Assembly (NCBI GenBank): GCA_964247055.1
Contig: OZ176055.1
Coordinates: forward strand, 7,068,001 to 7,132,000
Reading direction: 5' to 3'
DNA: 64,000 nt
Source of the DNA: Paragordius varius
Taxonomy: Eukaryota; Animalia; Nematomorpha
Part shown: in pieces, positions 5,214 through 64,000 of the stretch
Position numbering within the stretch: position 1 is the first letter of the stretch
Layout of the letters: each line of letters starts with the position of its first letter
The notes under the pieces: generated by a model
What the model was told of the DNA's origin: nothing
Databases searched by the model: none
The model's input: the letters and a program-made list of their open reading frames with translations, nothing else
Position numbers and translations under genes: made by a program

Positions 5214-8200
5214 TAACTAAAAAGACAATAGTAAAGCATAACCTAAAGTATTTGCATTTTCTCCAAAAAAACCTGATGTTTTGCGTAGAGCTTTAAAATC
5301 CAAAAATATTTTTTTGACGATTTAGTAGGACAATTTGTTTATTGAAAATTAATGTCGCTGTTGCACCCGTGAGTAATTGTTTTTTTTTCTATAGTTTAGA
5401 GTGCATTGGGGTTCAGAAAAAAAATATTCCGCAGTGTGAGGAATTTTTGTTTATAACCACGAGAGAAATAATGATATGATTTAAAAAATTAATATTTTAA
5501 TCAATGAATTTAGAATAACTCTGGAATAAATTTTATATGAAAACATTTGGACTGTAAAACCGGATCCAAATAGGACGGTTTTAAATAGAAACCGGGTTAT
5601 ATGTTTTTACAGCATCAAAAATCTCCTAAATATTTGCAGTATGCAACTTATGCCTTAAAAAATTTTGAGATACCAATTATAATGAACCTCAAAACAATCA
5701 CCATGGAATAATAAGATTTTAACCAGATAATACGTATAATTTGAATTATTTTTTTTGATATTTTAAATATTTTAATTAAAATATAATATTCTTGCCCCTC
5801 CTTTCAAATAATAAATCATTCAATTAATTTTACAAGCGTCGCCCAAAACGTGACTTTCACAAAAAATTATAAATTTGGGGCTTTTTTTAATAACAATTTT
5901 TCTGTTGGTAAATTATTGATTTTTTTCAGCGTGTATTATTAAACAATCTACCCAAATTTTTATGGCTTAAAATCAGTGGAAGTCAATCTTATTTTTTGTG
6001 TACAGAAAATATTAATATTAAATTTTACCACTTTTTGTGGACAAGAATCTTGTTAACAACCCTTTTAAACTTATTGGTGTAAAGAGGGTTTGAGTTTCGA
6101 CCAGTCAAAAAATAATAACCATCGAACCGCTATGAATACAGTCATCATTAAACTACAATTGTAAAATATTTTATAGCTAAACCAAATTAAATACGGATTC
6201 AATTTGTTGTAAAATCGATTTACATATTTAATATTATATAAAATTTATATATGAGTACTTTATATTGTATTACAATATGCTTGAAAGTTTTTGACCGAGG
6301 CCAGGATTAATTCATCAATGCATTCAACAACCCTAGGCTCAGGGTAATATTTTGCGTTTTTTACGAATATATATATTTCTTATAGTAAATATAAAATTTG
6401 GGAATGTAAATCAAATATTTTTTGTTATCAATAGTGTGGCGGTATTAAACAATTGTAGAAAATATTTTTCCCAAGATTTAATTTAACTACAAGAAATTTT
6501 AAAATCTATAGGTTTTTTAAAAATCTTATATTATATTTTTTAATTTTCGTTTAAAAAGATATGATTTTGGCTTAGATTTTCCGGTACAAGAAAACCTCAA
6601 GAATAAAATAATTAATGATAAAAAAGTATTTTCGGTGTTAAATTTGATTTATAAAAAAATTCGCGATAATCTTTGCCAAATTTCAGAAACGTAATAACTA
6701 TATTTATTCATTTTTTTATAAAACCAGACATGTGCAAACATATTATATTTTTATACTTTTAACCATTTTTCAGACAAGCAAGCAAAGCAAGAAAAATGGG
6801 AAAAAAGATAATCCCCTAAAGCTTTTTGGTAATTTTTGTTTTTTAATAGAAATGTAAAAATTGTTTTTGGTGGTGAGGCGTTTTTGCATCTTTTTTGTTT
6901 TATTATAATTTTGGCGTCATCGGCTAGCAATATATTAGTCTGGGTTTGGAAAATTGTTTTATAACTATATTTTACAAAAAACATAATGCATTTGCATAAA
7001 AAACATAAAAGAAGTATTAAATTAAAAATGCAAAAATAGTAGATGATAAACCATTTTATCCGTAATATTAAGATAAATTATGAGAAGAAACATTCAATAT
7101 ATATACATTTAATCTGTCCATCTTTGTTTTCATACCATTTCTTTGACATCAAACGCAAGTTGAAAAAGATATTTATAATAATTTTGAGATATGCCTCTAT
7201 AATTTGGTTTTTATTAGATAAGTTTTTTTTCGATGTATAAAAAGAGCTGTAGATTTGCTTTAAAGATAAATATATTTTTTGAATATATTTGAAGTTTAAG
7301 ACTAATATAAACATATTTCGGCATTTGACGCATAATAAATCGTAATATCACTTTGATCTGATATTAAACAAGTAGTTTGCTATTAATAAATATGAATTGA
7401 AAATCAGTTGGTATAAAATATAACCTTTAAAGGTTATATTTTCATTCTGTTAGTTACTCATGTAAGTTCATAATTCATTTTTCAGAATATGTAGAAAACA
7501 TTTCATAAAAAGGGCAGGTCTCTTTAATGGAGCTTGGTTGGCATTTTCTTTGATCTTTATTATAAATTCGTACGTATTTTGCACAAAAAAGCTAAATGTA
7601 AAAAAATAATGTATACACATTTTTCATCTATAATTTTCGTTTTGTATGTTTTGATGAACTTTTATAATGTATATTATACGTTTATTCTTGTCTGTTTTTC
7701 CTTAACCAAAAAACATCTATCTACCAACCAACAAAACCATTGGATGGCTCGCTTTGCAAACAACAAGAAGAATAATTTTGAGATAAATTATCATTATTTT
7801 TTCCATTTTTAATAGTAGTTTTTGGCAATTTTTTTTCATTAAATGGGATGTGTCTTGCCCATTTTTTGCGTTTTATGAAAGATATTAGTATCTACGCACG
7901 CCTACATAAACGATGACATTTTCTACAACGCAATAAAGCAAACACACTTTATTATGGCCAATATTTTGATTATTATCAACAAAATTAATTAAAATGCCAA
8001 TTTCCTTTGCAAATTACAAAAACAATATGGGGGATATTCCATATCATAACAGTTATGATTCAAAAGCCAATTTAAATTTTATTGATGGAATATGAATTAC
8101 AAGTACATTGAATTATTTTTATAAAATAATATCTAAGAAATACTTAGATTATAAAATTTAACATGAAACCTTAGAAATTAATATTTAATCTTATTGAACT

Positions 8201-11510: not shown

Positions 11511-13418
11511 ATCTATACATTAAGGATATATAGCGATTTATTGTAACAGAGATGTCGCAAATAATTTTATTTTCCATGCGAATTTTTTTTCATGCAATTC
11601 AACTGTAAATTATTTTAAATATTAATACCCAACATTTTTATAATCTCTACACTTTAATTGCACTCTTGAAAACTTTAATTTCCTCCCTTGTGACCTCACT
11701 CACACTACATTTTAAATTTATTTCTAATTCTTTTATTTTACCTTTGAACATTTTAATATCAAACTACAAGCCAAATTCACCAAGAAAATATATTATGTGT
11801 TGGGTTAAATCTCATAAATGCTTGGATAATTGAAAAAAAAACAATTTTTTAAAGAGTAAAAAATTATAATACATAAAAAGTAATCTTAATTAAATGGTAA
11901 TTTTTTATTATTATTTTAGTATAAAGGTGAATTTGAAATGATCAAGGTTTTGTTATGAATTTGAGCGTCTTAATTTATTTGAGTGTAAATTAATGTTTAT
12001 GTATTAATATAAAGTTTAAATAAATGGCACCACCATTTTCCCAAAACTTTTGCAATATGTTATAAAAAGATAAAAATAATTTATATTTAGCGTAATTTAC
12101 ACTAAACTTTTTTACTATTTAGATATACGATTGAACTTGGCTCTGAGTGAACAATGGGCTGACTGTATGTTCTGTATTATCCTCTTTGTTTATATAAAAT
12201 GACACATGAAGTGCGCCATGGTGCCATTTTTAATTGGCATATATAACAGCAAAAATATTACTGTAACATATCTAGAATGGGTTCATTTGCGCAAACTTAT
12301 AAATTGTGTACTTCGCGTCAAAATCGAATTTTGTACTTTAATTGATATGTTAAAAAGCAAAATTTTTTATCTACTGTTATCTCAATCTAACACAATAAAG
12401 TTCATATTATAAAAATTAAATTAATATATATTTAATTTCAAACTAAAAAAGCCAACATGTTAATTTTTTTTTAAATATATATAATTTATTTTGTGTAAAT
12501 GTATGTGTGAGATGTTAAAAACTGTCAATTTGTAAAAAATGACCTCTTTCAAACACAATCTCCTTGTCATAAAATGTTTTTTATTACATCATAACAGGCA
12601 TTAAACGCTCCTTTGAGCATATTAACTAGGAGAAGAAAATATCCCAAAAGAACTCAAAGAAAAAATATTGTGTTTTGTGTGAACTGTATTTTTCATACAT
12701 GTGACATAAATTAAATGTTCAATGTCTCAATTTTTACATTATATTGTTTTTTTATATTAATGGTTTGAGGAAGAACAAAAATTATCCATTAATTTTTCCA
12801 AAAAGATATCATAATTAAGAGGAAAATTTTATGGTGAAACGTTGGAATTATTTTAATGCTATAAATGTTTTATAGTATTTTCGTTCTATCCATAAAAAAT
12901 ATTTCTCCATAAAAACTAGGCACACTCATCTTCTTTCATATGACATTAATTGACAAACGTGATAAGTTAAAGATATAGATTCCCTCATAATACATGATAA
13001 TATAATTATTAAAACGTAAAACAAAACAGATAAACCAAGAAAAAAATGCCCTTTTGTACATATTAATATTCAACAAGGGATACTATTTGGCCAAATCAAA
13101 TTACCATTAGTGAAAACATTTAATAATTAAAGTATTTGTGCACGAGAGGCATGGTTAAATCAGACTCAGTAATAAAAATTTTATCCAAAAAATATTGGAT
13201 AAATTTTTTTATTTATGCCATTAATTGCCACTTGAAAAAATACCATTTAAACTGTTCTCACAACATATATCATGCTTCCAAAATTCATTCAAATCCACTT
13301 TTCATATACACCGAAAACATCATCTCTACCTCACATCTTCTATTCGTATTTAACAGTAAAGTTAAAATTAAAACGATTTTGAAAGATATATTACAACAAA
13401 ACTCTCTGTTTTTGAAAA

Positions 13419-14897
13419 ATGGCGTCCCATTTGCAAATTTTAAACCGTCATCAAATATTGCCTCAATATTATGTTACGCCACAAGTTATAACATACTTCT
13501 ATCAATTGTCCCCACATCATATGATAAGTAATGAAAGAAATATTAAATGTTTACACAAACGGCAAACATTTCAAACAGACCCAACCACATATATCAAACG
13601 AAATCACCTAGATGGGAAAACATATTGGATGCAAAATAATGAAACGGTTAAAGAGCCTGGAAACGAATTTTATGCGCGAGAACTGAGTTTGATTTCTACC
13701 CACAAAGCACAGCTACTTAAATCCAATAATTTTTCTAATCAAACTTTTCCATGGCTTTGTACATCACCTACCTACTCCTATTACTGTTATATGACAAATT
13801 TTATGGATCATAATAAAAATAGTAATTATTACCATATTAATTTTAATAATAATACTTTATGTAATCAATTAAATCATGATCGAGGCTTAAATTTTTTAAA
13901 TGGACAAAACAATGCGCATGTGTTTTCGGGGTACGATCCTAAAAGTTTAGATGGAAGGATAATTAATTCTTCCTCACAAATTGCCAGAACTGACTCGTTA
14001 AATAATTCACCACCAATAAATTCTTATAGTTCGTCTGCGAGTTATAAGGCCAAGAATAATTTTAATTTTAACGGCATAGGAAAGACAAATCGATTCGAGG
14101 ATTTCAACAATTATTACAACGTTGACCGAATTTCAATCAATGATACTTGTGATAATACAAGCCGTGAATATGATTGCTTATCTAATTATGCCAATATTGC
14201 CTCTTCAAAAGTTTCTTGGGATGATAGCGATGCTTCTCTCAGTCCCAACCAGCAAAGTACTGTTAATGAATATGGTAGTAATAATTATATGTCAGATTCT
14301 GTGTCCAACGTAAATACGACAAAAGGTCAAGAAAAAAATGAACAATGTTATAATAATACAACAGCAAATAACACCAGCTCTAGAAAACGAACCGCTTTTA
14401 ATACTGAACAGCTTGCTATTTTAGAGCATGAATTTAAAACGAAGAAATATCTTTCGCTCAATGAACGTTCCGAAATGGCTTTAAACCTTAATCTGAGCGA
14501 AGCTCAAATTAAAATATGGTTTCAAAATCGCCGGGCCAAATGGAAACGTATGAAAGCAACTGGGAAAGATTCAATCCTTCCTTCCCTAGGTAACACGAGT
14601 AGCGTTTACAAAAACAATCCTTTAAGGCCGGATGTTGAAAACTTACCTTCACCTGATTACGTAGGGGATTTTGATTCCAATTTACATAGAGATAATGCAA
14701 AAGCGAGTGTTTTACTAAAAAACTTTTGGTGCAATCGAAAAATGGCTTCGGGGACTACCTTATCAAATAATGCTGGTAAAACCACTGGGCCATCAAAGCT
14801 GATTGTACCCATTCCTATACATGTCTCACGTTTAGCGTTTCGAAATCAACATCAAAGCCGTAACAATAATACCAACAAGAATAATATTTCTTCATAG
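13419..14897 (+). CDS. Gbx: Gbx/unplugged homeobox transcription factor (ANTP class)
   Basis: 492-aa ORF with homeodomain [59 protein letters not shown]. The KKYLSL and RRAKWKR signatures and the Gbx-specific C-terminal motif [20 protein letters not shown] are present. The true start codon is uncertain. Confidence 0.93.
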
Positions 14898-14942
14898 TTT
14901 GAAAAATAATTAAACTTAAACCTTAAAAGAAAATCATAAAAC

Positions 14943-15170
14943 ACAGGGTACCTTACAAATCATACATATTATTTAACAAACACAGGGTTTAAATTTTATT
15001 GTACATTTTTTACAGGGTAACCATTTTACATTATATTATATATATTAATATTTTTACTATGATTTAACCAAAAAATGTGTATATTGAAAGCAAAAATGTT
15101 ATTTTGGGATATTTGATATTTTTTATGGATATATGCATTCGGACATAAACACGGTAACATTGTACAGGGT
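14943..15170 (+). promoter_or_regulatory. Cluster of miR-10-family seed sites in the Gbx 3'UTR
   Basis: ACAGGGT at 14943 (ACAGGGTA), 14982, 15012 (ACAGGGTA) and 15164, all on the sense strand, between the stop codon (14897) and AATAAA at 15249. Confidence 0.75.
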
Positions 15171-17552
15171 CTTCATACCTTTATTAATTTCCTTAGAATT
15201 TATTATTTATCATTGCAATATGATATAACAATTTTCTATACTATAAAAAATAAATTTATTTCTTATATAAAAACGATCCTCGAATTAGAGTAAAAATTGA
15301 AAGTATGCAGACAAAACTTCAAAATATAGAGTCAAATTTTCTTCAAAAGTTTTAAAGCTTATTTTCATATATAAATTTTAAAATAACAATTGTAAAATAT
15401 ATGTGTTAATACCTATTTATACATCTCTATTTTGAACTTTCAAATTTGAACAGTTAGTTAGTTATGTGTAAAAATAAAGTTAAAAAAGTATGATTACTTT
15501 TCAAAAAAATATGTGTCTTTCTCTCACATTTACCCCTAAAATTTTAATTTTTATTGTGTTTTCCTTAAAAAATATTTGGTTCTTTAAATTTTACAACCTT
15601 ATTTTGTGTATCATAACTCCAGTATAAAGTTTTTCAGACCTACCATAAATTGTTCTTACATGAAAATATAAGTTGCAATTATAGTAAAAAATGAATTGAA
15701 CATATTAATTTATCATTTTGATTAAATTTTTGGTTTAGTTGTTAAAGTACTTTATTAAACTAATAAATGGTTTTGCCCGCTCAAAATTGGAATCTGCGAG
15801 AATAATCAAAAGGGATCATATTTTTGCTTCGCAAAATAATAGCAGAAAAATTGAATAGGTGGACAAAAAAACTAGGGTCGGCTCGTGTAGATGCGCTAAA
15901 AAGAGGATTTGGTTTTTTTTCCTATTTAGAGCTGCTAAATTTGAGGTTCTGTAAAATTATAAATATTGCAATATTAAAACCATGATAAATGCATTAGATA
16001 TCGGAAAATAAATTTTTATGGCTAACAATAATTTTTTAACGGTATATATTTTAAAACTAATAAATTCAAATCCAGTGATTACAAAGCAACAGAAATTACT
16101 ATTTTCATATATATTTATATTTGAGGGCGTTTTTGATCGAATTTAATACATTTATTCGGAATTGTAACGATAGTATTGAGAATATTCTATCTGGATATCT
16201 ACTTAAAAAGTATATAAAATATGTAGCATAGTGGTTATTACGTTTTACTATAACGTATGAATGAAAATATAAATTATTAGCTCTAGAAAATATTTTATTA
16301 TATTCTTGATTAACCCAAAAATATCTAACCAATTTTCAATAATTAGTTTTTCGTGAGATGTTGTTATACATTATTATAAGATACATGGGATTAAAATTTT
16401 ATTCTTGTCCACATGGTTCAAATTTATGAAAAATATAATTGGCTTAGAGAAATTTCATTTTTTACAAAGAGTATTTATTATATGATACATCTTAGCTTAA
16501 GTGTAAAATAATGATTTTTAGATGACATGTGACATTTATTTTTTTCATCCCTAGCTGTTTTAGCTTTGGCTTCTATCACCATTCTTTCTCCTAAAAGTTT
16601 CCAACAAGACTACAACAAAAATGCTCGCGCGTTTAATTAAGGCATTGAAATTCCTATATATATAGATGAATTGTACGTGTTTTCACATAAAATAGGAAAT
16701 AAAAAGCAAACAGAAAACACTTTAACATTGTTGTTAAGATCAAAGAGTCAAACAAGTAAAAATAGTTAATTCTATTTCCAATAATTTTTGTCAAATCCCT
16801 ATTTGACTTTTTATGGAAAAACATGTTTCAATATCTCTTTCTTTTTCTGCACCAAAACTAATTGGCAAAAAATGATTGATGCTAAAAAGTGTCTTTTTTG
16901 ACTTTATACTGAAATAGTTTTTTACCGAACAACTTTCATCAATCGGTACATTCCATAATAAAAGTATTATATAGCTGTTGCCTAATCTTCCATAAGAATT
17001 TATCTCATATATGTTTTGATTGTGAGCTGTCATATACACAGTTTACCTGAAGGATTCGCTTAATATCGAAAAAATACCTTGGTTGATAATTTATGCTGCC
17101 GCAAAGGAGATTATTCAAATTGTAATATTTTTTTCCGTTAACCTATATCTTGTAGTTTTAGTGCAAATTTATCTAAACTAGCCATTACAATAGCCATATT
17201 ATATGGGTCTTTTGAATAGTTTATTTAAGGGAAAAGTTCATACTTGCTAATAAATATAGTATAAAAAGCTATTATTGACCATTTTAAAATTTTAATTATC
17301 AGAAAAAAGAACAAAGCATATGCAGAAAATTAATTATTCAGATGCGCCTTGCTTCCCATTGATTAAACGCCTAACAAAAGGTATATATTTCACATCGCCC
17401 AATCGAGACCCTACCCCAAACACGATTGGCATCATTAAACTTAAGTATAAATTACGGTAATAATTTATAAGTATTTTTTTACACGGATTAGTCAAATAAA
17501 AAGGAATTTATACATTTGTTATACTTCTAAATCCCAAACAAAATATCTAAAC

Positions 17553-28494: not shown

Positions 28495-28507
28495 TCACTT
28501 CCCCCTT
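28495..28507 (-). other. Polypurine tract
   Basis: AAGGGGGAAGTGA on the element strand, immediately before the 3' LTR. Confidence 0.85.
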
Positions 28508-29240
28508 AAGAGAACCGGACCGGCGGTCGCCGAATTCTCTCGGGGTAACGTCGCTCGTGCGGATTTGCATTGATATTGTCATTATTATTATTAATGTTAT
28601 CATTGCTACTATCATTATTATTATCATTTATTTTATCATTATTATTGTTATTACTATTGTTATTATTATCAATACTACTATCATTATTATTATTGTTATT
28701 GTCTATATTACTATCATTACTATTGTTTGGTGCGGTTGAGTTGGCCGGTAGGTCTACGTGTTTCAACTGATCTGCATGCTTTCTGACAATCTTCTGGTTT
28801 ACCTGATCCCACACACTGTACGAAAGAAGGCCCGTTCTATCAACAACATCGCCGGCTCGCCATCCAACATTTTGTTCGTTTCTCATCATTACGGGTTGGT
28901 TTATTGAGAATTCACGGCGTGGACGGGGTGCGTCTAAGATTGTTGCTTTTGTGTTGATCCAGGTGAGGGGTGTTTGAGATACTCGTTTGAAGAGTAGTTG
29001 AAACGGGGTTTCTTTTGTAGTCGCATGTATTGAATTACGATATGACCATAGAGTGGTATTGAAGGCTTCTTGTGGTGAAATATTATCATTTTTGATTTTT
29101 CTATACTTGCCCTTGAGGGTCCCCACTAACCTTTCTACCATCCCATTACTTTTAGGATGATAGGGGGTTACCCTCACGTGTTTAATACCCAAGTTTGTTA
29201 GAGTGGATGTGAAGTACGAATTACTAAAATAAGAAGCATT
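28506..29240 (-). pseudogene. Out-of-frame C-terminal half of integrase
   Basis: Reads NASYFSNSYFTSTLTNLGIKHVRVTPYHPKSNGMVERLVGT...RRYPERIRRPPVRFS in a different frame from gag-pol, so it is separated by a frameshifting deletion at ~29240. Confidence 0.9.
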
Positions 29241-32200
29241 TTATGCAATATGTTTACCGAATTAACCTTTTTTAACATGAACCCTTCCGCCCATTTGGAT
29301 GAGCTATCAATCAGTAACAACCAATAATACCCGTCAACTGGTCCCGCTATATCGATGTGTAACCGTTCCCATATCGCAGCATTTGGATCCCAATGATAAG
29401 TCGGATTTTCAACTAGGCTTGGCTTGTTTATCTGACATGCACTACACTCACTGTATCTTCTTACCAAATCGTTCTCTAATTTCGGCCAAAAACAAGTAAA
29501 CCTTGCCATTGCTTTCATTGTTTCTACGTTATTGTGCCCGCTGTGTAAGTAGTTGACCACGTTTGACTGTAAGCTTTCTGGAATGATAATTCGATCGTTT
29601 AAACTGACCAATCCGTATTGGTACGAAATCTCTCCCTTCCGATTCGTAAACCCAGCCAACTCAACATCACTCCAATCTTGGTTATGAATCGCCTTAATTA
29701 CTTTCTGCAAAATTTTATCTTTAACCGTTTCTCTCCGAATTTCATCGCGACTTAACTGAACATTATGACAATTAAGAAACCTAAGATATCTAGTTACCAT
29801 GTAATCTCTATCGATTGTGTCGACATTATCATCACTGGGACATCTTGATAGGTAATCAGCTCTATTCTTGGGACCCGCCTGATAACTAAGTTCAAAGTCA
29901 TAATCATTCAAACGGTTCACCCATCTTAAAATTTTCGCATTTTGTATTTCTTTCAAATTTCTATCCCTATTTATTAACCTAACAAGTGGTAAGTGGTCTG
30001 TCAAAATTTCAAACTTTCTACCATAAATGAAGTTGTGGAACTTTTCTAATGCAAAAACAATAGCCTTTAATTCCTTTTCTATCGTGGAGTAGTTTGATTC
30101 TGCGGTACTACATTTTCTTGAACCATAGGCAATGGGTTTCCTTTCACCATTTACAACATGACTTAAAATACATCCAAACCCTATATCTGAGGCATCGGTT
30201 TCAATTACTAACTTTCTATCCGGATTGTATGGTGTTAAAAATACTTGTTCACTTAATAATTCCTTAGCGGCTTTCCAACAATTCTCATGTTTTTCCGACC
30301 AGTTCCATCTAACGTTCTTACTTGTTAAACTATGTAAGTCACTTACAATCAATTGAAGCTTGGGTATAAATCTTTCATGAAACGTCAAAAATCCTAGAAA
30401 ACTTCTTAAAGATTTTTTATCCACAGGTTTTTTAAAATCATTGATTGCTTTTACTTTATTCTTGCAAGGACTTATACCTTTATTACTTATTTCAAATCCC
30501 AGATAACTTACTGAAGGTTCACCAATTTTTATTTTATCTTTTCTTAATCTAAAACCTGCTAATTCTAACCGATTTAAAACATTATTAAGATTTATTAAAT
30601 GTTCCTGTTCAGATTTGCCAGTTACTAAAACATCATCTAAATATGCACAAGTGCCGGGACAATCTTTTATAACCTGGTCCATGACTCGTTGGAAAATTAT
30701 TGGTGCTGTTGACAGTCCGAAAGGCATCCTTTTGTAGCGAAAAAATCCTTTGTGAGTCGCAATTGTCAAGAGATCTTGTGATTCTTTGGTTACGGGCATT
30801 TGTAGGTAGGCATCTTTCAAGTCAATCTTAGTGAAAACTTGGCCTTCGCCAATCTTACTCACTAAATCATCAAACGTTGGAATGATATGAGAGTCCTCAG
30901 TGAGCCACTTGTTGATGGTAACTCTAAAATCGCTGCAAATTCTTACCTCTCCATTCGCTTTGAGCACATTAACGGTGGGCGTGGCCCATGTCAGAGGTGT
31001 AAGGTTGGGATCTATCGGCTCCAAAATGTCTAACTTTTGTAATCTTAGTAATTCATTTTCAACTTTTGCTCTTAGGGGAAACGGTACTCGGCGGCAAGGC
31101 CAAACTTTGGGGGAGGCATTGGGTGCTATATGAATTGTAACTGGCTCAATGTAACAACCTAATTCCTCTTTAAATAGATTAGGGAAATTTTCAATAATTT
31201 TATCAAGTTTAAGAAAGTTAATTCGTACTTTAGGAATGTCGATGTTAAATCTCGTGATCCAATCCAAGCCACAAATGAGCGGTGCCTTTGACATTTTTTC
31301 TTTCAATACACAACATTCTGCGTTCCCCAAGTTTTGCCCATTGATTTGCACTGTGACTGTTGTTACGCCCAGTAGAGGTACTATGCTATTATTGTAGGCT
31401 TTTACTGGCGGTATGGGTCTAATATTTGGCTTGCCAACTTGTTTCCAGGTGTCAAAGCTGATAACACTGATGTCAGCTCCAGTATCATAGATAAACGTTT
31501 GTTCTGTGTTGTTTATCATTATTTTTACGGTCCATGGTGAGGTTGGCATTGCTTTTCTATGGATCTGGCGGTTGAACAAATTTTTGGCAGTGTTTTTTGA
31601 TCTACACATTTTTGCGAAGTGATGAGGTTTTCCGCATTTATTGCAATTGCGGTTCCAGGCAGGACATTTGTTTGGTCCATGGCTATTACCACAACGATTG
31701 CACGAATGTGTTAGGGGTTTTGCTGTTGGCTGTCGTGAACGCATGGCCTTGTTATTATTATTGGTGTGTTGTAATCGATTTAAATTACTACCATTATTAT
31801 AATTGGTATTATCATTATTGTTATGAAGGCCAGCCCTGGCAGCCTCGTGTGCTAGTGCGAGATCCACTATCGTTTCTAGAGGCACGGGTTGTCCGTTGAT
31901 CTCGGCATCGGGATACCTTGAATGTATGTCAATTTCCAATTGTGGTTGCCGTAACCCAATGACGAAGGCATCTCGAATCCGTTCCTCTATTGAATCCTTA
32001 AATTTTGCCTCTTCGGCTGCGATTTTTACCCGTTCTAGAAATTGGGTAAACGATTCGGTGTTGTTCCGCACAAGTCGGAAAAACTCAAATCTGCTTTGGA
32101 ATTTCGACTTTGTGGGATTGAATACCTTTAAACCCGTTGCCATTATCTCGGTCCATTCTGCATCTTTTATCTTTTTCGGATAGAGTCGTTGGTTGATTTT

Positions 32201-32374
32201 GCGTACCACCATTAGACCTCCATACGCAAGCAAGGTTGTTTTGAGGGCTTGTTCTGTTACAGGGATATCTTTTGCCTCCATAACATTTGTCATATACTCA
32301 ACGTATTCCTCAAACTTAATATTATCATTATATTTTTCGATGCATAGGTTAGCGAGATTGATTGGCGTTGTCAT
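29198..32374 (-). CDS. Gag-pol polyprotein (truncated within integrase)
   Basis: 1058 aa containing two CCHC knuckles (CNRCGNSHGPNKC, CNKCGKPHHFAKMC), protease DTGA, RT YLDD, RNase H IETDASD, and the integrase HHCC zinc motif with HIDIAG. Confidence 0.95.
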   Translation of the reverse strand: MTTPINLANLCIEKYNDNIKFEEYVEYMTNVMEAKDIPVTEQALKTTLLAYGGLMVVRKINQRLYPKKIKDAEWTEIMATGLKVFNPTKSKFQSRFEFFRLVRNNTESFTQFLERVKIAAEEAKFKDSIEERIRDAFVIGLRQPQLEIDIHSRYPDAEINGQPVPLETIVDLALAHEAARAGLHNNNDNTNYNNGSNLNRLQHTNNNNKAMRSRQPTAKPLTHSCNRCGNSHGPNKCPAWNRNCNKCGKPHHFAKMCRSKNTAKNLFNRQIHRKAMPTSPWTVKIMINNTEQTFIYDTGADISVISFDTWKQVGKPNIRPIPPVKAYNNSIVPLLGVTTVTVQINGQNLGNAECCVLKEKMSKAPLICGLDWITRFNIDIPKVRINFLKLDKIIENFPNLFKEELGCYIEPVTIHIAPNASPKVWPCRRVPFPLRAKVENELLRLQKLDILEPIDPNLTPLTWATPTVNVLKANGEVRICSDFRVTINKWLTEDSHIIPTFDDLVSKIGEGQVFTKIDLKDAYLQMPVTKESQDLLTIATHKGFFRYKRMPFGLSTAPIIFQRVMDQVIKDCPGTCAYLDDVLVTGKSEQEHLINLNNVLNRLELAGFRLRKDKIKIGEPSVSYLGFEISNKGISPCKNKVKAINDFKKPVDKKSLRSFLGFLTFHERFIPKLQLIVSDLHSLTSKNVRWNWSEKHENCWKAAKELLSEQVFLTPYNPDRKLVIETDASDIGFGCILSHVVNGERKPIAYGSRKCSTAESNYSTIEKELKAIVFALEKFHNFIYGRKFEILTDHLPLVRLINRDRNLKEIQNAKILRWVNRLNDYDFELSYQAGPKNRADYLSRCPSDDNVDTIDRDYMVTRYLRFLNCHNVQLSRDEIRRETVKDKILQKVIKAIHNQDWSDVELAGFTNRKGEISYQYGLVSLNDRIIIPESLQSNVVNYLHSGHNNVETMKAMARFTCFWPKLENDLVRRYSECSACQINKPSLVENPTYHWDPNAAIWERLHIDIAGPVDGYYWLLLIDSSSKWAEGFMLKKVNSVNILHKMLLILVIRTSHPL

Positions 32375-38104: not shown

Positions 38105-40018
38105 ATGTCAAAAAATTATTGCGTACAAAATCGTGAAAAAATTGAACCGATTTCTTTACAGAATCTTTTACCATTGTTTGACAATTGTCCTTGCGCAAAA
38201 AAACCGAAAAAGGAAATAAACTATGACAATCATGTTCAGATTAACAATGATAAGAAAGATAATTCCGAAAAAATTGGTAAATTCATTAGTAAAAATTTGC
38301 AAAATTCTTCGATACAAGCACTAAATTCTAGTAAAGATGATTTTGTAAGTAACTCATCCACAGATACTTTGATAGAAAATGCGACAACAGGCGTGAACGA
38401 GAATTCACCTCTAACCAAAAGTTTAATAAAACTGAACAATAATTTCCTACCTCAAAATGATACAAATTTTACTATGAATAAAGAACCATTTAACGGAGAA
38501 TCGGTTAAAATCAATAATGATAGAACCTGTGACGATGTACAGAATCTTGATCAATTATTAAAATATTTATCGCTCGTTTTCTATAAATCTCTCAATGTTT
38601 CCCAATTTTTGACATCGTATGCCGTAAACGCCGTTCCCCTCCTATCATGTTTGGCTTATATGCCACAAATATTGAAGCAATGTTTGAAACAATCACAAAC
38701 TCCTGATGATAGTACAATGAAATTTGAGGACCCACATAATTCATTTTCCCCTAATACAGAGTATTGGAATGGCGAATTTAGTAAAATTTGGAACTTTCAT
38801 CACAAACTATGGCTTAATGTTTTAGAGTTACGGGACATGTTTGGTGACACTTTCCTTACAAGCATACAAAATCAAATTGAGGGTAAATTAAAAAATAATG
38901 ACAATAATAGTAGTCAAGACAGTCAAATTTCATCTCTAACCTTTAACTGTAGTGATACAAAGGATATCGAACCAAAAAAAACTGATAATTTATATTATTC
39001 AATCTATTCAAGTGCTGCTAATATACCTTCTAATTTAAGCACTATTGAAAGCAATATAGTTTCCACAAATGCCCGCATCAGTGAGTTGTTGAATCATAAT
39101 GTTTTATTGGGTAGCAAGACGGTAGACTACGTGAATCCATTTACAAATATTCCGACGCCCCCTAGTAAATTTGTTATTAATGCATTTAGAAAAAGATAAT
39201 CATTTATGTATCGATAGCCCTGACACAACTATCAATAAATGTATGATGTCCCAATCACAAATGTGTAATGAAGAGAAAACCAATTTTACTAAAAATGAGC
39301 TTGACACTCAAATTATATCCACTATTAAAAATGGAACTAAGAAAATGATATCAAGTAAGCAAAACATTATTCTTTTAAAATAATTATTCATGTATCTATT
39401 TACAGTATGTATAACAGTTCTAGTTTTATTCAGTATTGCCAGATGCACACACATTAAAGATAACTATCAACTTGGGGTTATTTTTTTCCTTTTTTGTATT
39501 ATCTAATATAAAGGTGCTTTGCTGTTCATGCTCTCTAACAAAATTTAATGAAATACTAAGAATATATAGTTATTCACAATATATTTGCGTTACCATTTTT
39601 CTATGTACACCCCTAGTTTCTCCTATTAATTTTTCCGGCCCCTTAAAAACAGATCTATGATTTTAATTTTAATACTTAAATGTGTGCTGCGGTGTTAGAA
39701 TGTTCCAACGGTTGTACATCAACCACTGCTGTCTCACCTTATAAACGGGAAAGATTTACATTTAAATCAACACACCTGGAAATTCTGGAGAGATACTTTA
39801 AGGAAGATCCATATCCAGATGCTAACAAACGCGATGTAATAGCACAGACATGCAACGAAATTGTTAGCCAACAGATTGGTCGTGAATTGGTACCTAAAGA
39901 AAAAGTTACGATACACGTGGTTGCCAATTGGTTTGCGAATCGTCGCAAAGAAAGTCGACGAAAAAAAGGTATTATTTCACAAAGATTTATATACAACTAA
40001 AACATTTTAGAAGAATAA
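38105..40018 (+). CDS. HMBOX1: HNF-class homeobox protein (Hmbox1/HNF1-like extended homeodomain)
   Basis: Homeodomain RERFTFKSTHLEILERYFKEDPYPDANKRDVIAQTCN-[insert]-KVTIHVVANWFANRRKE has A50 and a 16-aa insertion between helices 2 and 3. Phase-consistent model: exons 38105-39164, 39190-39354 and 39699-39968, then either read-through to the stop at 40000 or a 42-nt intron to a stop at 40018. Linkage of the upstream exons is inferred from splice phase. Confidence 0.75.
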
Positions 40019-53149: not shown

Positions 53150-56100
53150 TTGCCAACAATCATATTATACCATATATTTTTTGATATTATCAACAATCAA
53201 CCATATATTGTGAACAATCAAATAATATTTAATGTAATTAAAATATGTTCAATTATATTTTATTGTTTACAATATCAACCATATATTTTTAACAATCAGA
53301 ATATAGATTTTATTGTTTACAATAATCAAAAAATATATTTTTAACCATTAAAAAATATTTTCAAAAATAAAAATATATTACGCAATGATATTTAAATGAT
53401 TAAACAATTAACCATATATTGTTAACAATATAATAATATTTCCAACAATTAATAAATATTACCCAATAACATTTTAATGTTTCCAACAATCAGCCATATA
53501 TTTTCAATAATCAAATTATATTTCAACAATCAATATATATATATTAACCAATAATATATGAATGTTTCCAACAAGCGATACATTTTCAACAATCAAATAA
53601 TATTTTCATCAAAAATATATTACCCAATAACATTTGCAACAATCAACCATATATTTTCAACTATCACTTAATAATTCCTAAAATTAAAATATATTATTGA
53701 ATATCATTTTAATGTTTATAAATAATCACCATATATTTTCAAAAATAAAATAATCCAACATAGCCAATAACATTTAAATGTTTATAAACAATTACCATAT
53801 ATTTTCAAATATCAAATAATATTTCCAACAATCAAAATATTTTTCCCAATAATATTATAATGTTTCCAACAATCAACCATATATTTTCAACAATCAAATA
53901 ATATTCCCAACAATCAAAAATTATTAACCAATAATATTTTAATGTTTCCAACAATCAACCATATATTTTTATCAATAATATTCCCATTTATGAAAAATTA
54001 TTAACCAATAATATTTTAATGTTTCCAACAATCAACCATATATTTTTAACAATCAAATAATATTCTTAACAATCAAAAATTATTACCCAATAATATTTTA
54101 ATGTTTCCAACAAACAACCATATATTTTCAACAATCAAATAATATTCCCAACAATCAAAAATTATTACCCAAAAATATTTTAATGTTTCCAACAATCAAC
54201 CATATATTTTTATCAATCAAATGATATTCCCATTAATGAAAAATTATTACCCAATAATATGTTAATGTTTCCAACAATCAACCATATATTATCAACATCA
54301 ATGGATATTCCAACAATCAAAAATTATTACCAAATAATATTTTAATGTTTCCAACAATAAACTATATATTTTAACAATCAAATAATATTCCCAACAATCA
54401 AAAATTATTACAAAATAATATTTTAATGTTTCCAACAATCAACCATATATTTTCAACAATCAAAAAATATTACCCAATAATATTTTAATGTTTCCAACAA
54501 TCAACCATATATTTTTAACTATCACTTAATAATTCCTAAAATTAAAATATATTACCCAATAACATTTTAATGTTTATAAACAATCACCATATATTTTCAA
54601 AAATCAAATAATATTCCCAACAATCAAAAATTATTACCCAATAATATTTTTATGTTTCCAACAATCAACAAAATATATTTTCAACAATCAAATAATATTA
54701 ATTTCAAAAATCAAAAATTATTACCCAATAATATTTCAATGTTTCCAACAATCAACCATATATTTTAAACAATCAAATAATATTCCCAACATTTAAAAAT
54801 TATAACCCAATAATATTTTAATGTTTCCAACAATCAACAATATATAGTTTCAATAATCAAATAATATTCCCAATACTCAAAAATTATTACCCAATAATAT
54901 TTTAATGTTTCCAACAATCAACCATATATTTTCAACAATCAAATAATATTCCCAACAATCAAAAATTATTACCCAATAATATTTTAATGTTTCCAACAAT
55001 CAACCATATATTTTCAACAATCAAATAATATTCCCAATAATCAAAAATTATTAACCAATAATATTTTAATGTTTCGAACAATCAACCATATATTTTCAAC
55101 AATCAAATAATATTACTTTCAACAATCAAAAATATTTTTCCAATAATATTTTAATGTTTCTAAAAATCAACCATATATTTTCAACAATCAAATAATATTC
55201 CCAACAATCAAAAATTATTAACCAATAATATTTTAATGTTTCCAACAATCAACATATATTTTCAACAATCAAATAATATTCCCAACAATCAAAAATTATT
55301 AACCAATAATATTTTAATTCCAACGATCAACCATATATTTTCAACAATCAAATAATATTACTTTCAACAATCAAAAATATTTTTCCAATAATATTTTAAT
55401 GTTTCTAAAAATCAACCATATATTTTAAACAATCAAATAATATTCCCAACATTTAAAAATTATAACCCAATAATATTTTAATGTTTCCAACAATCAACAA
55501 TATATAGTTTCAATAATCAAATAATATTCCCAATACTCAAAAATTATTACCCAATAATATTTTAATGTTTCCAACAATCAACCATATATTTTCAACAATC
55601 AAATAATATTCCCAACAATCAAAAATTATTACCCAATAATATTTTAATGTTTCCAACAATCAACCATATATTTTCAACAATCAAATAATATTACTTTCAA
55701 CAATCAAAAATATTTTTCCAATAATATTTTAATGTTTCTAAAAATCAACCATATATTTTCAACAATCAAATAATATTCCCCACAATCAAAAATTATTACC
55801 CAATAATATTTTAATGTTTCCAACAATCAACCATATATTTTCAACAATCAAATAATATTCCCAATAATCAAAAATTATTAACCAATAATATTTTAATGTT
55901 TCGAACAATCAACCATATATTTTCAACAATCAAATAATATTCCCAACAATCAAAAATTATTAACCAATAATATTTTAATGTTTCCAACAATCAACCATAT
56001 ATTTTCAACAATCAATTAATATTCCCAACAATCAAAAATTATTAACCAATAATATTTTAATGTTTCCAACGATCAACCATATATTTTCAACAATCAATTA

Positions 56101-59100
56101 ATATTCCCAACAATCAAAAATTATTAACCAATATTATTTTAATGTTTCCAACAATCAACCATATATTTTCAACAATCAATTAATATTCTCATAAATCAAA
56201 TAATAATACCCAATAATATGTTAATGTTTCCAACAATCAACCATATATTTTCAACAATCAATTAATATTCCCAACAATCAAAAATTATTAACCAATAATA
56301 TTTTATGTTTCCAACAATCAACCATATATTTTCAACAATTAATTAATATTCCCAACAATCAAAAATTATTAACCAATAATATTTTAATGTTTCCAACGAT
56401 CAACCATATATTTTCAACAATCAATTAATATTCCCAACAATCAAAAATTATTAACCAATAATATTTTAATGTTTCCAACAATAAACTATATATTTTAACA
56501 ATCAAATAATATTCCCAACAATCAAAAATTATTACCAAATAATATTTTAATGTTTCCAACAATAAACTATATATTTTAACAATCAAATAATATTCCCAAC
56601 AATCAAAAATTATTACAAAATAATATTTTAATGTTTCCAACAATCAACCATATATTTTCAACAATCAAAAAATATTACCCAATAATATTTTAATGTTTCC
56701 AACAATCAACGATATATTTTTAACTATCACTTAATAATTCCTAAAATTAAAATATATTACCCAATAACATTTTAATGTTTATAAACAATCACCATATATT
56801 TTCAAAAATCAAATAATATTCCCAACAATCAAAAATTATTACCCAATAATATTTTTATGTTTCCAACAATCAACAAAATATATTTTCAACAATCAAATAA
56901 TATTAATTTCAAAAATCAAAAATTATTACCCAATAATATTTCAATGTTTCCAACAATCAACCATATATTTTAAACAATCAAATAATATTCCCAACATTTA
57001 AAAATTATAACCCAATAATATTTTAATGTTTCCAACAATCAACAATATATAGTTTCAATAATCAAATAATATTCCCAATACTCAAAAATTATTACCCAAT
57101 AATATTTTAATGTTTCCAACAATCAACCATATATTTTCAACAATCAAATAATATTCCCAACAATCAAAAATTATTACCCAATAATATTTTAATGTTTCCA
57201 ACAATCAACCATATATTTTCAACAATCAAATAATATTCCCAACAATCAAAAATTATTAACCAATAATATTTTAATGTTTCGAACAATCAACCATATATTT
57301 TCAACAATCAAATAATATTACTTTCAACAATCAAAAATATTTTTCCAATAATATTTTAATGTTTCTAAAAATCAACCATATATTTTCAACAATCAAATAA
57401 TATTCCCAACAATCAAAAATTATTAACCAATAATATTTTAATGTTTCGAACAATCAACCATATATTTTCAACAATCAAATAATATTACTTTCAACAATCA
57501 AAAATATTTTTCCAATAATATTTTAATGTTTCTAAAAATCAACCATATATTTTCAACAATCAAATAATATTCCCAACAATCAAAAATTATTAACCAATAA
57601 TATTTTAATGTTTCCAACAATCAACCATATATTTTCAACAATCAAATGATATTCCCAACAATCAAAAATTATTAACCAATAATATTTTAATATTTCCAAC
57701 AATCACCCATATATTTTAGACAATCAAATATAATTCCCAATAATCAAAAATTATTAACCAATAATATTTTAATGTTTCCAACAATCAACCATATATTTTC
57801 AACAATCAAATAATATTCCCAACAATCAAAAATTATTAACCAATAATATTTTAATGTTTCGAACAATCAACCATATATTTTCAACAATCAAATAATATTA
57901 CTTTCAACAATCAAAAATATTTTTCCAATAATATTTTAATGTTTCTAAAAATCAACCATATATTTTCAACAATCAAATAATATTCCCAACAATCAAAAAT
58001 TATTAACCAATAATATTTTAATGTTTCGAACAATCAACCATATATTTTCAACAATCAAATAATATTACTTTCAACAATCAAAAATATTTTTCCAATAATA
58101 TTTTAATGTTTCGAACAATCAACCATATATTTTCAACAATCAATTAATATTCCCAACAATCAAAAATTATTAACCAATAATATGTTAATGTTTCCAACAA
58201 TCAACCATATATTTTCAACAATCAAATAATATTCCCAACAATCAAAAATTATTAACCAATAATATTTTAATTCCAACGATCAACCATATATTTTCAACAA
58301 TCAATTAATATTCCCAACAATCAAAAATTATTAACCAATAATATTTTAATGTTTCCAACAATCAACCATATATTTTCAACAATCAATTAATATTCCCAAC
58401 AATCAAAAATTATTAACCAATAATATTTTAATGTTTCCAACAATCAACCATATAATTTCAACAATCAATTAATATTCCCAACAATCAAAAATTATTAACC
58501 AATAATATTTTAATGTTTCCATCGATCAACCATATATTTTCAACAATCAATTAATATTCCCAACAATCAAAAATTATTAACCAATAATATTTTAATGTTT
58601 CCAACAATCAACCATATATTTTCAACAATCAAATAATATTCCCAACAATCAAAAATTATTACCCAATAATATTTTAATGTTTCCAACAATAAACTATATA
58701 TTTTAACAATCAAATAATATTCCCAACAATCAAAAATTATTACCAAATAATATTTTAATGTTTCCAACAATCAACCATATATTTTCAACAATGAAAAAAC
58801 ATTACCCAATAATATTTTAATGTTTCCAACAATCAACGATATATTTTTAACTATCACTTAATAATTCTTAAAATTAAAATATATTACCCAATAACATTTT
58901 AATGTTTATAAACAATCACCATATATTTTCAAAAATCAAATAATATTCCCAACAATCAAAAATTATTACCCAATAATATTTTTATGTTTCCAACAATCAA
59001 CAAAATATATTTTCAACAATCAAATAATATTCCCAACATTTAAAAATTATAACCCAATAATATTTTAATGTTTCCAACAATCAACCATATATTTTCAACA

Positions 59101-62100
59101 ATCAAATAATATTACTTTCAACAATCAAAAATATTTTTCCAATAATATTTTAATGTTTCTAAAAATCAACCATATATTTTCAACAATCAAATAATATTCC
59201 CCACAATCAAAAATTATTAACGAATAATATTTTAATGTTTCCAACAATCAACCATATATTAATAACAATCAAATAATATTCTCATAAATCAAATAATATT
59301 ACCTAATAATATTTTAATGTTGCCAACAATCAACCATATATTATTAAGAATCAAATAATATTCTCAACAATCAAATAATATTACCCAATAATATTTTAAT
59401 GTTTCCAACAATCCACCATATATTTTCAACAATCAAATAATATTCTCATAAATCAAATAATATTACCTAATAATATTTTAATGTTGCCAACAATCAACCA
59501 TATATTACTAACAATCAAATAATATTACCCAATAATATTTTAATGTTTCCAACAATCCACCATATATTTTCAACAATCAAATAATATTACCCAATAATAT
59601 TTTAATGTTTCCAACAATCAACCATAGATTTTCAACAATCAAATAATATTCCCAGCAATCAAAAATTATTAACCAATAATATTTTAATGTTGCCAACAAT
59701 CAACCATATATTTTCAACAATCAAATAATATTCCCAACAATCAAAAATTATTAACCAATAATATTTTAATGTTTCCAACAATCAACCATATATTTCCAAC
59801 AATCAAATAATATTCTCAACAATAAAATAATATTACCCAATAATATTTTAATGTTGCCAACAAACAACCATATATTATTAAGAATCAAATAATATTCTCA
59901 ACAATCAAATAATATTACCCAATAATATTTTAATGTTGCCAACAATCAACCATATATTATTAAGAATCAAATAATATTCTCAACAATCAAATAATAATAC
60001 CCAATAATATTTTAATGTTGCCAACAATCAACCATATATTCTCAACAATCAAATAATATTCTCAACAATCAAATAATATTACCCAATAATATTTTAATGT
60101 TGCCAACAATCGACCATATATTTTCAACAATCAAATAATATTCCCAGCAATCAAAAATTATTAACCAATAATATTTTAATGTTGCCAACAATCAACCATA
60201 TATTTTCAACAATCAAATAATATTCCCAACAATCAAAAATTATTAACCAATAATATTTTAATGTTTCCAACAATCAACCATATATTTCCAACAATCAAAT
60301 AATATTCTCAACAATCAAATAATATTACCCAATAATATTTTAATGTTGCCAACAATCAACCATATATTATTAAGAATCAAATAATATTCTCAACAATAAA
60401 ATAATATTACCCAATAATATTTTAATGTTGCCAACAATCAACCATATATTATTAAGAATCAAATAATATTCTCAACAATAAAATAATATTACCCAATAAT
60501 ATTTTAATGTTGCCAACAATCAACCATATATTATTAAGAATCAAATAATATTCTCAACAATCAAATAATATTACCCAATAATATTTTAATGTTGCCAACA
60601 ATCAACCATATATTATTAAGAATCAAATAATATTCTCAACAATAAAATAATATTACCCAATAATATTTTAATGTTGCCAACAATCAACCATATATTCTCA
60701 ACAATCAAATAATATTCCCAACAATCAAATAATATTACCCAATAATATTTTAATGTTGCCAACAATCAACCATATATTATTAAGAATCAAATAATATTCT
60801 CAACAATCAAATAATAATACCCAATAATATTTTAATGTTGCCAACAATCAACCATATATTATTAAGAATCAAATAATATTCTCAATAATCAAATAATATT
60901 ACCCAATAATATTTTAATGTTTCCAACAATCAACCATATATTTCCAACAATCAAATAATATTCTCAACAATCAAATAATATTACCCAATAATATTTTAAT
61001 GTTGCCAACAATCAACCATATATTATTAAGAATCAAATAATATTCTCAACAATAAAATAATATTACCCAATAATATTTTAATGTTGCCAACAATCAACCA
61101 TATATTATTAAGAATCAAATAATATTCTCAACAATCAAATAATATTACCCAATAATATTTTAATGTTGCCAACAATCAACCATATATTATTAAGAATCAA
61201 ATAATATTCTCAACAATCAAATAATATTACCCAATAATATTTTAATGTTGCCAACAATCAACCATATATTCTCAACAATCAAATAATATTCCCAACAATC
61301 AAATAATATTACCCAATAATATTTTAATGTTGCCAACAATCAACCATATATTATTAAGAATCAAATAATATTCTCAACAATCAAATAATATTACCCAATA
61401 ATATTTTAATGTTGCCAACAATCAACCATATATTCTCAACAATCAAATAATATTCTCAACAATCAAATAATATTACCCAATAATATTTTAATGTTGCCAA
61501 CAATCAACCATATATTATTAAGAATCAAATAATATTCTCAACAATCAAATAATATTACCCAATAATATTTTAATGTTGCCAACAATCAACCATATATTAT
61601 TAAGAATCAAATAATATTCTCAATAATCAAATAATATTACCCAATAATATTTTAATGTTTCCAACAATCAACCATATATTTTCAACAATCAAATAATATT
61701 CCCAGCAATCAAAAATTATTAACCAATAATATTTTAATGTTGCCAACAATCAACCATATATTTTCAACAATCAAATAATATTCCCAACAATCAAATAATA
61801 TTACCCAATAATATTTTAATGTTGCCAACAAACAACCATATATTATTAAGAATCATATAATATTCTCAACAATCAAATAATATTACCCAATAATATTTTA
61901 ATGTTGCCAACAATCAACCATATATTATTAAGAATCAAATAATATTCTCAACAATCAAATAATATTACCCAATAATATTTTAATGTTGCCAACAATCAAC
62001 CATATATTATTAAGAATCAAATAATATTCTCAACAATCAAATAATATTACTAAATAATATTTTAATGTTTCCAACAATCAACCATATATTTTCAACAATC

Positions 62101-64000
62101 AAATAATATTCCCAGCAATCAAAAATTATTAACCAATAATATTTTAATGTTGCCAACAATCAACCATATATTTTCAACAATCAAATAATATTCCCAACAA
62201 TCAAATAATATTACCCAATAATATTTTAATGTTGCCAACAAACAACCATATATTATTAAGAATCATATAATATTCTCAACAATCAAATAATATTACCCAA
62301 TAATATTTTAATGTTGCCAACAATCAACCATATATTATTAAGAATCAAATAATATTCTCAACAATCAAATAATATTACCCAATAATATTTTAATGTTGCC
62401 AACAATCAACCATATATTATTAAGAATCAAATAATATTCTCAACAATAAAATAATATTACCCAATAATATTTTAATGTTGCCAACAATCAACCATATATT
62501 ATTAAGAATCAAATAATATTCTCAACAATAAAATAATATTACCCAATAATATTTTAATGTTGCCAACAATCAACCATATATTATTAAGAATCAAATAATA
62601 TTCTCAACAATCAAATAATATTACCCAATAATATTTTAATGTTGCCAACAATCAACCATATATTCTCAACAATCAAATAATATTCCCAACAATCAAATAA
62701 TATTACCCAATAATATTTTAATGTTGCCAACAATCAACCATATATTATTAAGAATCAAATAATATTCTCAACAATAAAATAATATTACCCAATAATATTT
62801 TAATGTTGCCAACAATCAACCATATATTATTAAGAATCAAATAATATTCTCAACAATAAAATAATATTACCCAATAATATTTTAATGTTGCCAACAATCA
62901 ACCATATATTATTAAGAATCAAATAATATTCTCAACAATCAAATAATAATACCCAATAATATTTTAATGTTGCCAACAATCAACCATATATTCTCAACAA
63001 TCAAATAATATTCTCAACAATCAAATGATATTACCCAATAATATTTTAATGTTGCCAACAATCAACCATATATTATTAAGAATCAAATAATATTCTCAAC
63101 AATCAAATAATATTACCCAATAATATTTTAATGTTGCCAACAATCAACCATATATTATTAAGAATCAAATAATATTCTCAACAATCAAATAATATTACCC
63201 AATAATATAATGTTTCCAACAAACAACCATATATTATTAAGAATCAAATAATATTACCCAATAATATTTTAAGGTTGCCAACAATCAACCATATATTATT
63301 AAGAATCAAATAATATTCTCAACAATCAAATAATATTACCCAATAATATTTTAATGTTGCCAACAATCAACCATATATTATTAAGAATCAAATAATATTC
63401 TCAACAATCAAATAATATTACCCAATAATATTTTAATGTTGCCAACAATCAACCATATATTATTAACAATCAAATAATATTACCCAATAATATTTTAATG
63501 TTGCCAACAATCAACCATATATTATCAACAATCAAATAATATTCTCAACAGTCAAATAATATTACCCAATAATATTTTAATGTTTCCAACAAACAACCAT
63601 ATATTATTAAGAATCAAATAATATTCTCAACAATCAAATAATATTACCCAATAATATTTTAATGTTGCCAACAATCAACCATATATTATCAACAATCAAA
63701 TAATATTATCAACAATCAAATAATATTACCCAATGATATTTAAATGTTGCCAACAATCAACCATATATTATTAACAATCAAATAATATTCTCAACAATAA
63801 AATAATATTACCCAATAATATTTTAATGTTGCCAACAATCAACCATATATTATTAAGAATCAAATAATATTCTCAACAATAAAATAATATTACCCAATAA
63901 TATTTTAATGTTGCCAACAATCAACCATATATTATTAAGAATCAAATAATATTCTCAACAATCAAATAATATTACCCAATAATATTTTAATGTTGCCAAC
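53150..64000. repeat. 82-bp tandem satellite array, running off the window end
   Basis: The period measured at 54904/54986 is 82 bp. The monomer is AACAATCAACCATATATTTTC + AACAATCAAATAATATTCCC + AACAATCAAAAATTATTACCC + AATAATATTTTAATGTTTCC. It is degenerate over 53150-53850 and homogeneous beyond. Confidence 0.98.

Follow-up and report, generated by a model that had tools for sequence, protein, structure and literature searches.

Candidate miR-10 response elements in the predicted 3' untranslated region of Gbx in horsehair worms

Known targets of miR-10 and related systems

Few animal microRNAs are as old and as well conserved as miR-10, and most of the developmental targets known for it are Hox genes. 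Its gene has its canonical home beside a central Hox gene, and the microRNA represses Hox mRNAs such as hoxb1a and hoxb3a in zebrafish and HOXD10 in humans. The locus analyzed here resembles this system in two respects: ACAGGGT seed matches of the same Hox-cluster-encoded microRNA are found in the (here predicted) 3' untranslated region (3'UTR) of an ANTP-class homeobox gene, and a regulator expressed posteriorly would again dampen a gene of a more anterior domain. It differs in the target, which is Gbx, a non-Hox gene. Several copies of one seed match at cooperative spacing in the short 3'UTR of a developmental regulator are also a feature of the lin-41/let-7 and lin-14/lin-4 pairs of Caenorhabditis elegans. 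Those pairs, however, are temporal switches proven by genetics, whereas the Gbx case is known from sequence alone, and the Gbx sites pair through the seed only, without the bulged or 3'-compensatory pairing of the nematode examples.

In human neural progenitors, miR-10 acts as a caudalising factor, and its overexpression raises GBX2 (PMC4582174). Like the present locus, this system concerns anterior-posterior identity in the neural tissue near the Otx/Gbx border. As GBX2 rises upon miR-10 overexpression in that study (PMC4582174), it is not a direct target there, and a link in nematomorphs would be of opposite sign. In the literature searched, judged from titles, abstracts and PMC4582174, no direct link of miR-10 to Gbx2, Gbx, unplugged or unpg is reported. 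The link would add a new target to a well-known kind of regulation and remains a prediction. It would also offer a simple and testable entry, consisting of one UTR and one microRNA, into the axial patterning of the Nematomorpha, a phylum with hardly any molecular studies of development. MirGeneDB 3.0 added Gordionus sp. as the first nematomorph.

The Gbx gene and the ACAGGGT words of its 3' flank

The window, i.e., the whole stretch of 64,000 nt that was analyzed, carries an open reading frame (ORF) on the + strand at positions 13419-14897, which comprises 492 codons counted from the first ATG and ends with a TAG at 14895-14897. Its homeobox (14382-14549, + strand) was matched by the Pfam model PF00046 with 82 bits (C6:7082382-7082549), the Pfam Homeodomain match in the ORF standing at 1.2e-21. 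The best named protein matches were GBX-1, GBX-2 and unplugged, together with the Gordionus protein CAK9304556. A Gbx-type homeodomain is combined with the C-terminal family motif (K)[IL]VVPIP[IV]HV.R and with best reciprocal similarity to GBX/unplugged, and the original assignment of the gene to Gbx/unplugged is thereby borne out. Both the homeodomain and the C-terminal motif contain invariant columns in an alignment of the window protein with 12 Gbx proteins (13 proteins in total). As the protein stops a few residues past the C-terminal motif, like its relatives, the stop codon can be taken as the true coding end.

By far the nearest protein was found in the horsehair worm Gordionus sp. m RMFG-2023, with ~50% identity over the conserved 185 residues; the peculiarities NERSEMA, NFW and SRLA[FY]RNQHQSR are common to both Gbx proteins. 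The other Gbx protein matches (P0056-P0096) were dismissed as belonging to other clades, with nothing nematomorph-like among them. The original prediction had spoken of related spiralians. This frame was wrong, since the closest Gbx protein is that of Gordionus, an ecdysozoan, and the animal belongs to or near the Nematomorpha. A search of public sequencing runs returned words of the locus from DNA-like runs only and from none of the putative RNA runs. One contig marked “RNA?” touched the stretch over 62 nt of the homeobox with six differences and was discarded as most likely representing another homeobox gene. In one DNA run, the contigs across 13400-16400 exist in two versions of similar depth (about 230 and 199) that are ~7% apart over some stretches, which suggests that the sequenced sample contained two diverged haplotypes.

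The 3'UTR is predicted to extend from 14898 to 15284 (+ strand), a single-copy region with 22% GC. All four ACAGGGT copies are located on the sense strand between the Gbx stop codon and an AATAAA at 15249-15254 (+ strand). Site 1 (14943-14950) is an 8-mer, ACAGGGTA, 46 nt past the stop codon. Site 2 (14982-14988) is a 7mer-m8, ACAGGGT, 85 nt past the stop codon and 39 nt from site 1. Site 3 (15012-15019), again the 8-mer ACAGGGTA, lies 115 nt past the stop codon and 30 nt from site 2, and site 4 (15164-15170), a 7mer-m8, lies 267 nt past the stop codon and 152 nt from site 3. In both of the latter, a T stands opposite microRNA nucleotide 9, giving TACAGGGT. An exact search agrees with what had been read by eye, namely the four + strand copies at 14943, 14982, 15012 and 15164 ahead of AATAAA, the T-shifted word at sites 3 and 4, and a sole further copy in the window at 1950 (+ strand); the - strand of the window holds no copy.

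ACAGGGT is the complement of miR-10 nucleotides 2-8, and all four sites match the seed of the 22-mer encoded in the same genome, two as 8-mers and two as 7mer-m8 sites. Pairing is confined to the seed, without extended 3' pairing, and the duplex energies range from -11.4 to -15.4 kcal/mol. Sites of this kind are favored by a position more than 15 nt from the stop codon, by an A+U-rich context and by neighbors ~10-40 nt apart, which act cooperatively. The 60 nt flanking each site consist of 68-85% A+U. Seed matches of let-7, miR-100 and miR-125 were not found in the Gbx flank. Seed accessibility as estimated by partition-function folding was unremarkable and uninformative, with two sites above and two below the UTR median. 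The five polymorphisms of the flank (14918, 14922, 14955, 15050 and 15089) all fall outside the sites, a powerless test with ~0.4 hits expected.

The prediction that these words are part of the mRNA depends on the position of cleavage. Within 550 nt past the Gbx stop codon, AATAAA at 15249, 79 nt past site 4, is the sole canonical poly(A) hexamer. The same scan revealed an ATTAAA at 14909, 12 nt past the stop codon, which could in principle direct cleavage ahead of site 1. The sites would then lie outside the mature mRNA; alternatively, miR-10 and Gbx might never be co-expressed, and in either case there would be no regulation in vivo. This is considered improbable, as site 4 still precedes the sole AATAAA, the unique sequence stops shortly past this signal, and the presence of a genome-unique cluster and its recurrence in Gordionus would be left unexplained.

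As candidate microRNA sites, the four words were compared with the frequency of ACAGGGT in the whole assembly (110.56 Mb, 44 contigs), which contains 1830 + 1741 = 3571 copies on the two strands, or 1.6e-5 per position and strand. The rough estimate of ~1e-5 per position that had been made from base composition came close to this value. Under a Poisson model, four or more copies fall within 228 nt with a probability of 6.9e-12, and both strands of the whole genome should together yield 2.7e-5 four-site clusters. In a genome pattern search, triplets of ACAGGGT with gaps of at most 160 nt were identified in two places only, the Gbx flank and a tandem array on contig C1. The latter is a coding repeat of 126 bp (42 codons) in which ACAGGGT runs antisense to the reading frame, indicating that the word was merely copied together with the repeat unit. 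Pairs of ACAGGGT within 250 nt number 51, of which about 30 belong to the C1 array and three to Gbx; the ~18 located elsewhere compare with 14 expected. Gbx is thus a single statistical outlier in a genome that is otherwise random for this word. Among all repeated 7-mers of the flank, ACAGGGT was the most surprising (p 1.8e-11), the runners-up being its own overlaps.

Some further features of the word and of the C1 repeat were recorded alongside. The letters of ACAGGGT in reverse order occur 5904 times, clearly more often than the word itself (3571 copies). The region C1:9586084-9597895 holds two arrays in opposite orientation, built from a 126-bp unit (~93% alike) that encodes a 42-residue tandem repeat protein (...KPCMLKYYVNIIANQILKDAKLK...).

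The possibility that the sites belong to a dispersed repeat family was rejected. Positions 14898-15284 (387 nt) match only themselves in the genome, and contigs of public DNA runs cover them at single-copy depth, so that the motifs stand outside any such family, as required by the original prediction; repeat sequence begins only at ~15285. There, right past the predicted Gbx poly(A) region, a high-copy dispersed repeat occupies 15285-15520, with a contig depth ~100x that of its flanks and many loose contig ends at 15285/15289, 15328 and 15402.

A local origin of the cluster was considered as well. A run of 11 nt (AAACACAGGGT) is common to sites 1 and 2, and sites 3 and 4 agree at 10 of 11 nt (TTTTACAGGGT and TTGTACAGGGT), as might result from chance or from a neutral local duplication of a short unit without function. 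On the 5' side, the similarity between sites reaches no further than 4 nt beyond the motif, and on the 3' side it stops with the motif itself. With at most 11 nt in common, no bigger unit was duplicated, and a larger local duplication was therefore rejected. Chance is contradicted by the small number of clusters expected genome-wide (2.7e-5) and by the independent recurrence in Gordionus (P 1.5e-5, see below). A functionless origin is accordingly the least credible of the explanations weighed here and can be regarded as extremely unlikely.

The mir-10 gene and its recurrence with the Gbx sites in Gordionus

The exact miR-10-5p 22-mer, TACCCTGTAGATCCGAATTTGT, is present in this genome as one copy at C6:816691-816712(-), and a genome-wide pattern search that allowed three mismatches revealed one miR-10-like locus. 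The 22-mer resides in the 5' arm of a hairpin (L002:1425-1540(-), corresponding to C6 ~816.6-816.7 kb), where it is paired with a conserved 3p arm. The hairpin has a folding energy of -30.1 kcal/mol and a z-score of -3.76, and 0 of 200 shuffled sequences were as stable. A central-class Hox gene with a YPWM exon (homeobox C6:819568-819738(-)) lies on the same strand, and the microRNA gene follows 2.8 kb downstream of it; an Antp-like homeobox is found 14 kb away. The species thus possesses the microRNA on which the original prediction relied, as an exact 22-mer in a hairpin beside a Hox gene. Gbx and mir-10 are situated on the same contig at a distance of 6.25 Mb.

The Rfam model for mir-10 (RF00104) did not match this hairpin even at E 10. 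Relative to Gordionus, the loop of the precursor is extended by ~25 nt, and this unusual length accounts for the failure of the model; standard annotation would probably overlook mir-10 here. The first Rfam mir-10 match obtained on C6, at 1.35 Mb, was rejected since it represents the miR-100 of a miR-100/let-7/miR-125 cluster, with the seed ACCCGUA and not ACCCUGU.

Both the sites and the microRNA recur in a second genus. The Gbx locus of Gordionus (L060, GCA_954871325.2; single exon 6001-6969) was reached through the longest protein isoform. It contains two copies of ACAGGGT in 12,969 nt, compared with 0.41 expected, and both are sense-strand 8-mers (AACAGGGTAA). They are positioned at +148 and +219 from the Gbx stop codon, and the probability of at least two sense copies in the first 350 nt is 1.5e-5. 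Beyond A+T-rich noise, the Gbx 3' flanks of the two species are unalignable. In an unbiased survey of words shared by both flanks, ACAGGGT (6.8e-17) and ACAGGGTA (6.9e-13) nonetheless ranked at the top, far above the rest.

All six sites of the two species are found on the sense strand. This orientation bears on the view that the words act at the DNA level, as transcription factor sites in an enhancer or silencer downstream of Gbx. Enhancers typically hold clusters of identical short motifs, as would be the case here. Transcription factor sites are, however, usually free in orientation and not tied to a UTR, whereas the six copies are all sense, at most 270 nt past the stop codon and upstream of the poly(A) signal. 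A DNA element is therefore judged to be very unlikely.

Pairing with miR-10 would better fit the pattern of conservation. Over the six sites, the conserved block is confined to the exact seed match, with A as the next base at four of them, and other flanking bases vary; opposite microRNA position 9, for instance, the bases are C, C, T, T, A and A. Conservation of nothing but the seed match is the footprint expected of microRNA pairing and not of a longer protein-binding motif.

The microRNA itself was identified in Gordionus by searching with the Hox exon that adjoins mir-10. In the Gordionus locus L063, on the same chromosome as Gbx, the orthologous Hox gene is followed on its own strand, 4.8 kb further downstream, by an identical 22-mer miR-10-5p. 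Its hairpin has an energy of -38 kcal/mol and a z-score of -3.73, and was matched by the Rfam mir-10 model with an E of 7.8e-7 and 35.4 bits, below the gathering cut-off of 47.5 bits. Compared between the two genomes, the hairpins differ in the loop alone, with conserved 5p and 3p arms.

Any trans-acting factor that recognises ACAGGGT on the mRNA would produce the same statistics, so that the words might be conserved RNA elements read by an RNA-binding protein or by another small RNA with the seed ACCCUGU. Among sequences with at most three mismatches to the 22-mer, a single miR-10-like locus was found. Another reader of the words nevertheless appears unlikely, given that the conserved block coincides exactly with microRNA positions 2-8, that A is favored right after it, and that an identical miR-10-5p was kept in both genomes. 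We know of no RNA-binding protein with an ACAGGGT motif.

Predicted regulation of Gbx and its phylogenetic reach

Taken as miR-10 targets, the four ACAGGGT copies are likely to be canonical miR-10-5p response elements in the Gbx 3'UTR that would lower Gbx output where miR-10 is present. In the proposed mechanism, miR-10 would be transcribed from its usual place beside the central Hox gene and loaded into Argonaute. Its nucleotides 2-8 would then pair with four sites of the Gbx mRNA, of which three are 30-39 nt apart and therefore at cooperative spacing. The stability and translation of the Gbx mRNA would be lowered wherever miR-10 is made, presumably in the Hox-expressing trunk, and Gbx expression would be cleared or sharpened towards the Hox territory. 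We infer that the sites are part of the mRNA, that some cells contain both RNAs and that Gbx is repressed as a result. Gbx is thus probably turned down by miR-10 in these worms. What gives the prediction its interest is that a whole-genome count singles out a non-Hox gene of the head/trunk border as the clearest miR-10 target and that a second genus agrees.

The expectation that the Gbx flanks of relatives would share the sites held for Gordionus, with its two 8-mers, and failed for the more distant animals. Sense copies of ACAGGGT were not detected in 5 kb downstream of Gbx in the mayfly Cloeon (L061) and the mussel Mytilus (L062), nor in ~3 kb downstream of each of three metagenome Gbx loci (L026/L027, L028 and L029). 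Deep conservation was rejected on these grounds, and the link is not an ancient bilaterian one. Judging from the flanks compared, the repression of Gbx by miR-10 looks like a feature of the nematomorph lineage.

Among 30 homeobox loci of this genome (±1.5 kb each), Gbx alone has more than one copy of ACAGGGT. At nine other Hox-like loci, no sense copy was found within 1.5 kb of the homeobox, and one Hox-like locus (L040) shows a single, weaker 7mer-A1 match. In Gordionus, the 3' flank of the Hox gene adjoining mir-10 likewise holds no ACAGGGT. Within these ±1.5 kb windows, the pattern perhaps reflects a loss of canonical Hox targeting by miR-10.

The Hox genes themselves are spread widely in this genome. 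A proboscipedia/Hox2-like homeobox is located at C6:7197914-7198084 (-), 115 kb beyond Gbx, a labial-like homeobox at C6:8.07 Mb, and the central Hox genes together with mir-10 at C6:0.80-0.88 Mb. The Hox genes are thus dispersed over a single contig, in agreement with the published arrangement in Gordionus. Fragmented Hox clusters, located on one scaffold in Gordionus, were described in a 2024 survey covering nematodes and nematomorphs; the survey does not mention mir-10 or Gbx (PMC11603191). As a speculative and rather doubtful extension, it might be proposed that in horsehair worms miR-10 was rewired from Hox mRNAs to Gbx as its one outstanding multi-site target genome-wide, and that a post-transcriptional Gbx/Hox boundary was kept between the genera while the Hox cluster fell apart along the chromosome. 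If true, this would show that the main target of an ancient microRNA can change while its sequence and its place in the genome stay the same.

Several features elsewhere in the window were noted. A second homeobox at 39743-39961 (+ strand) is atypical: it carries an insertion, ends with VANWFANRRKE, resembles the HNF1 type and was matched by PF00046 with 44 bits. A retroelement pol frame at 28506-32374 (- strand) encodes an aspartic protease, a reverse transcriptase, an RNase H and an integrase zinc finger, with a fragment of the integrase core in a second ORF, and accounts for a GC-richer block at 28-33 kb. Satellite DNA fills the last part of the window (53764-64000, more than 10 kb); its unit measures 82 bp, with a higher-order period of 246 bp, ~20% GC and a GC skew near -0.8, and it continues past the window end.
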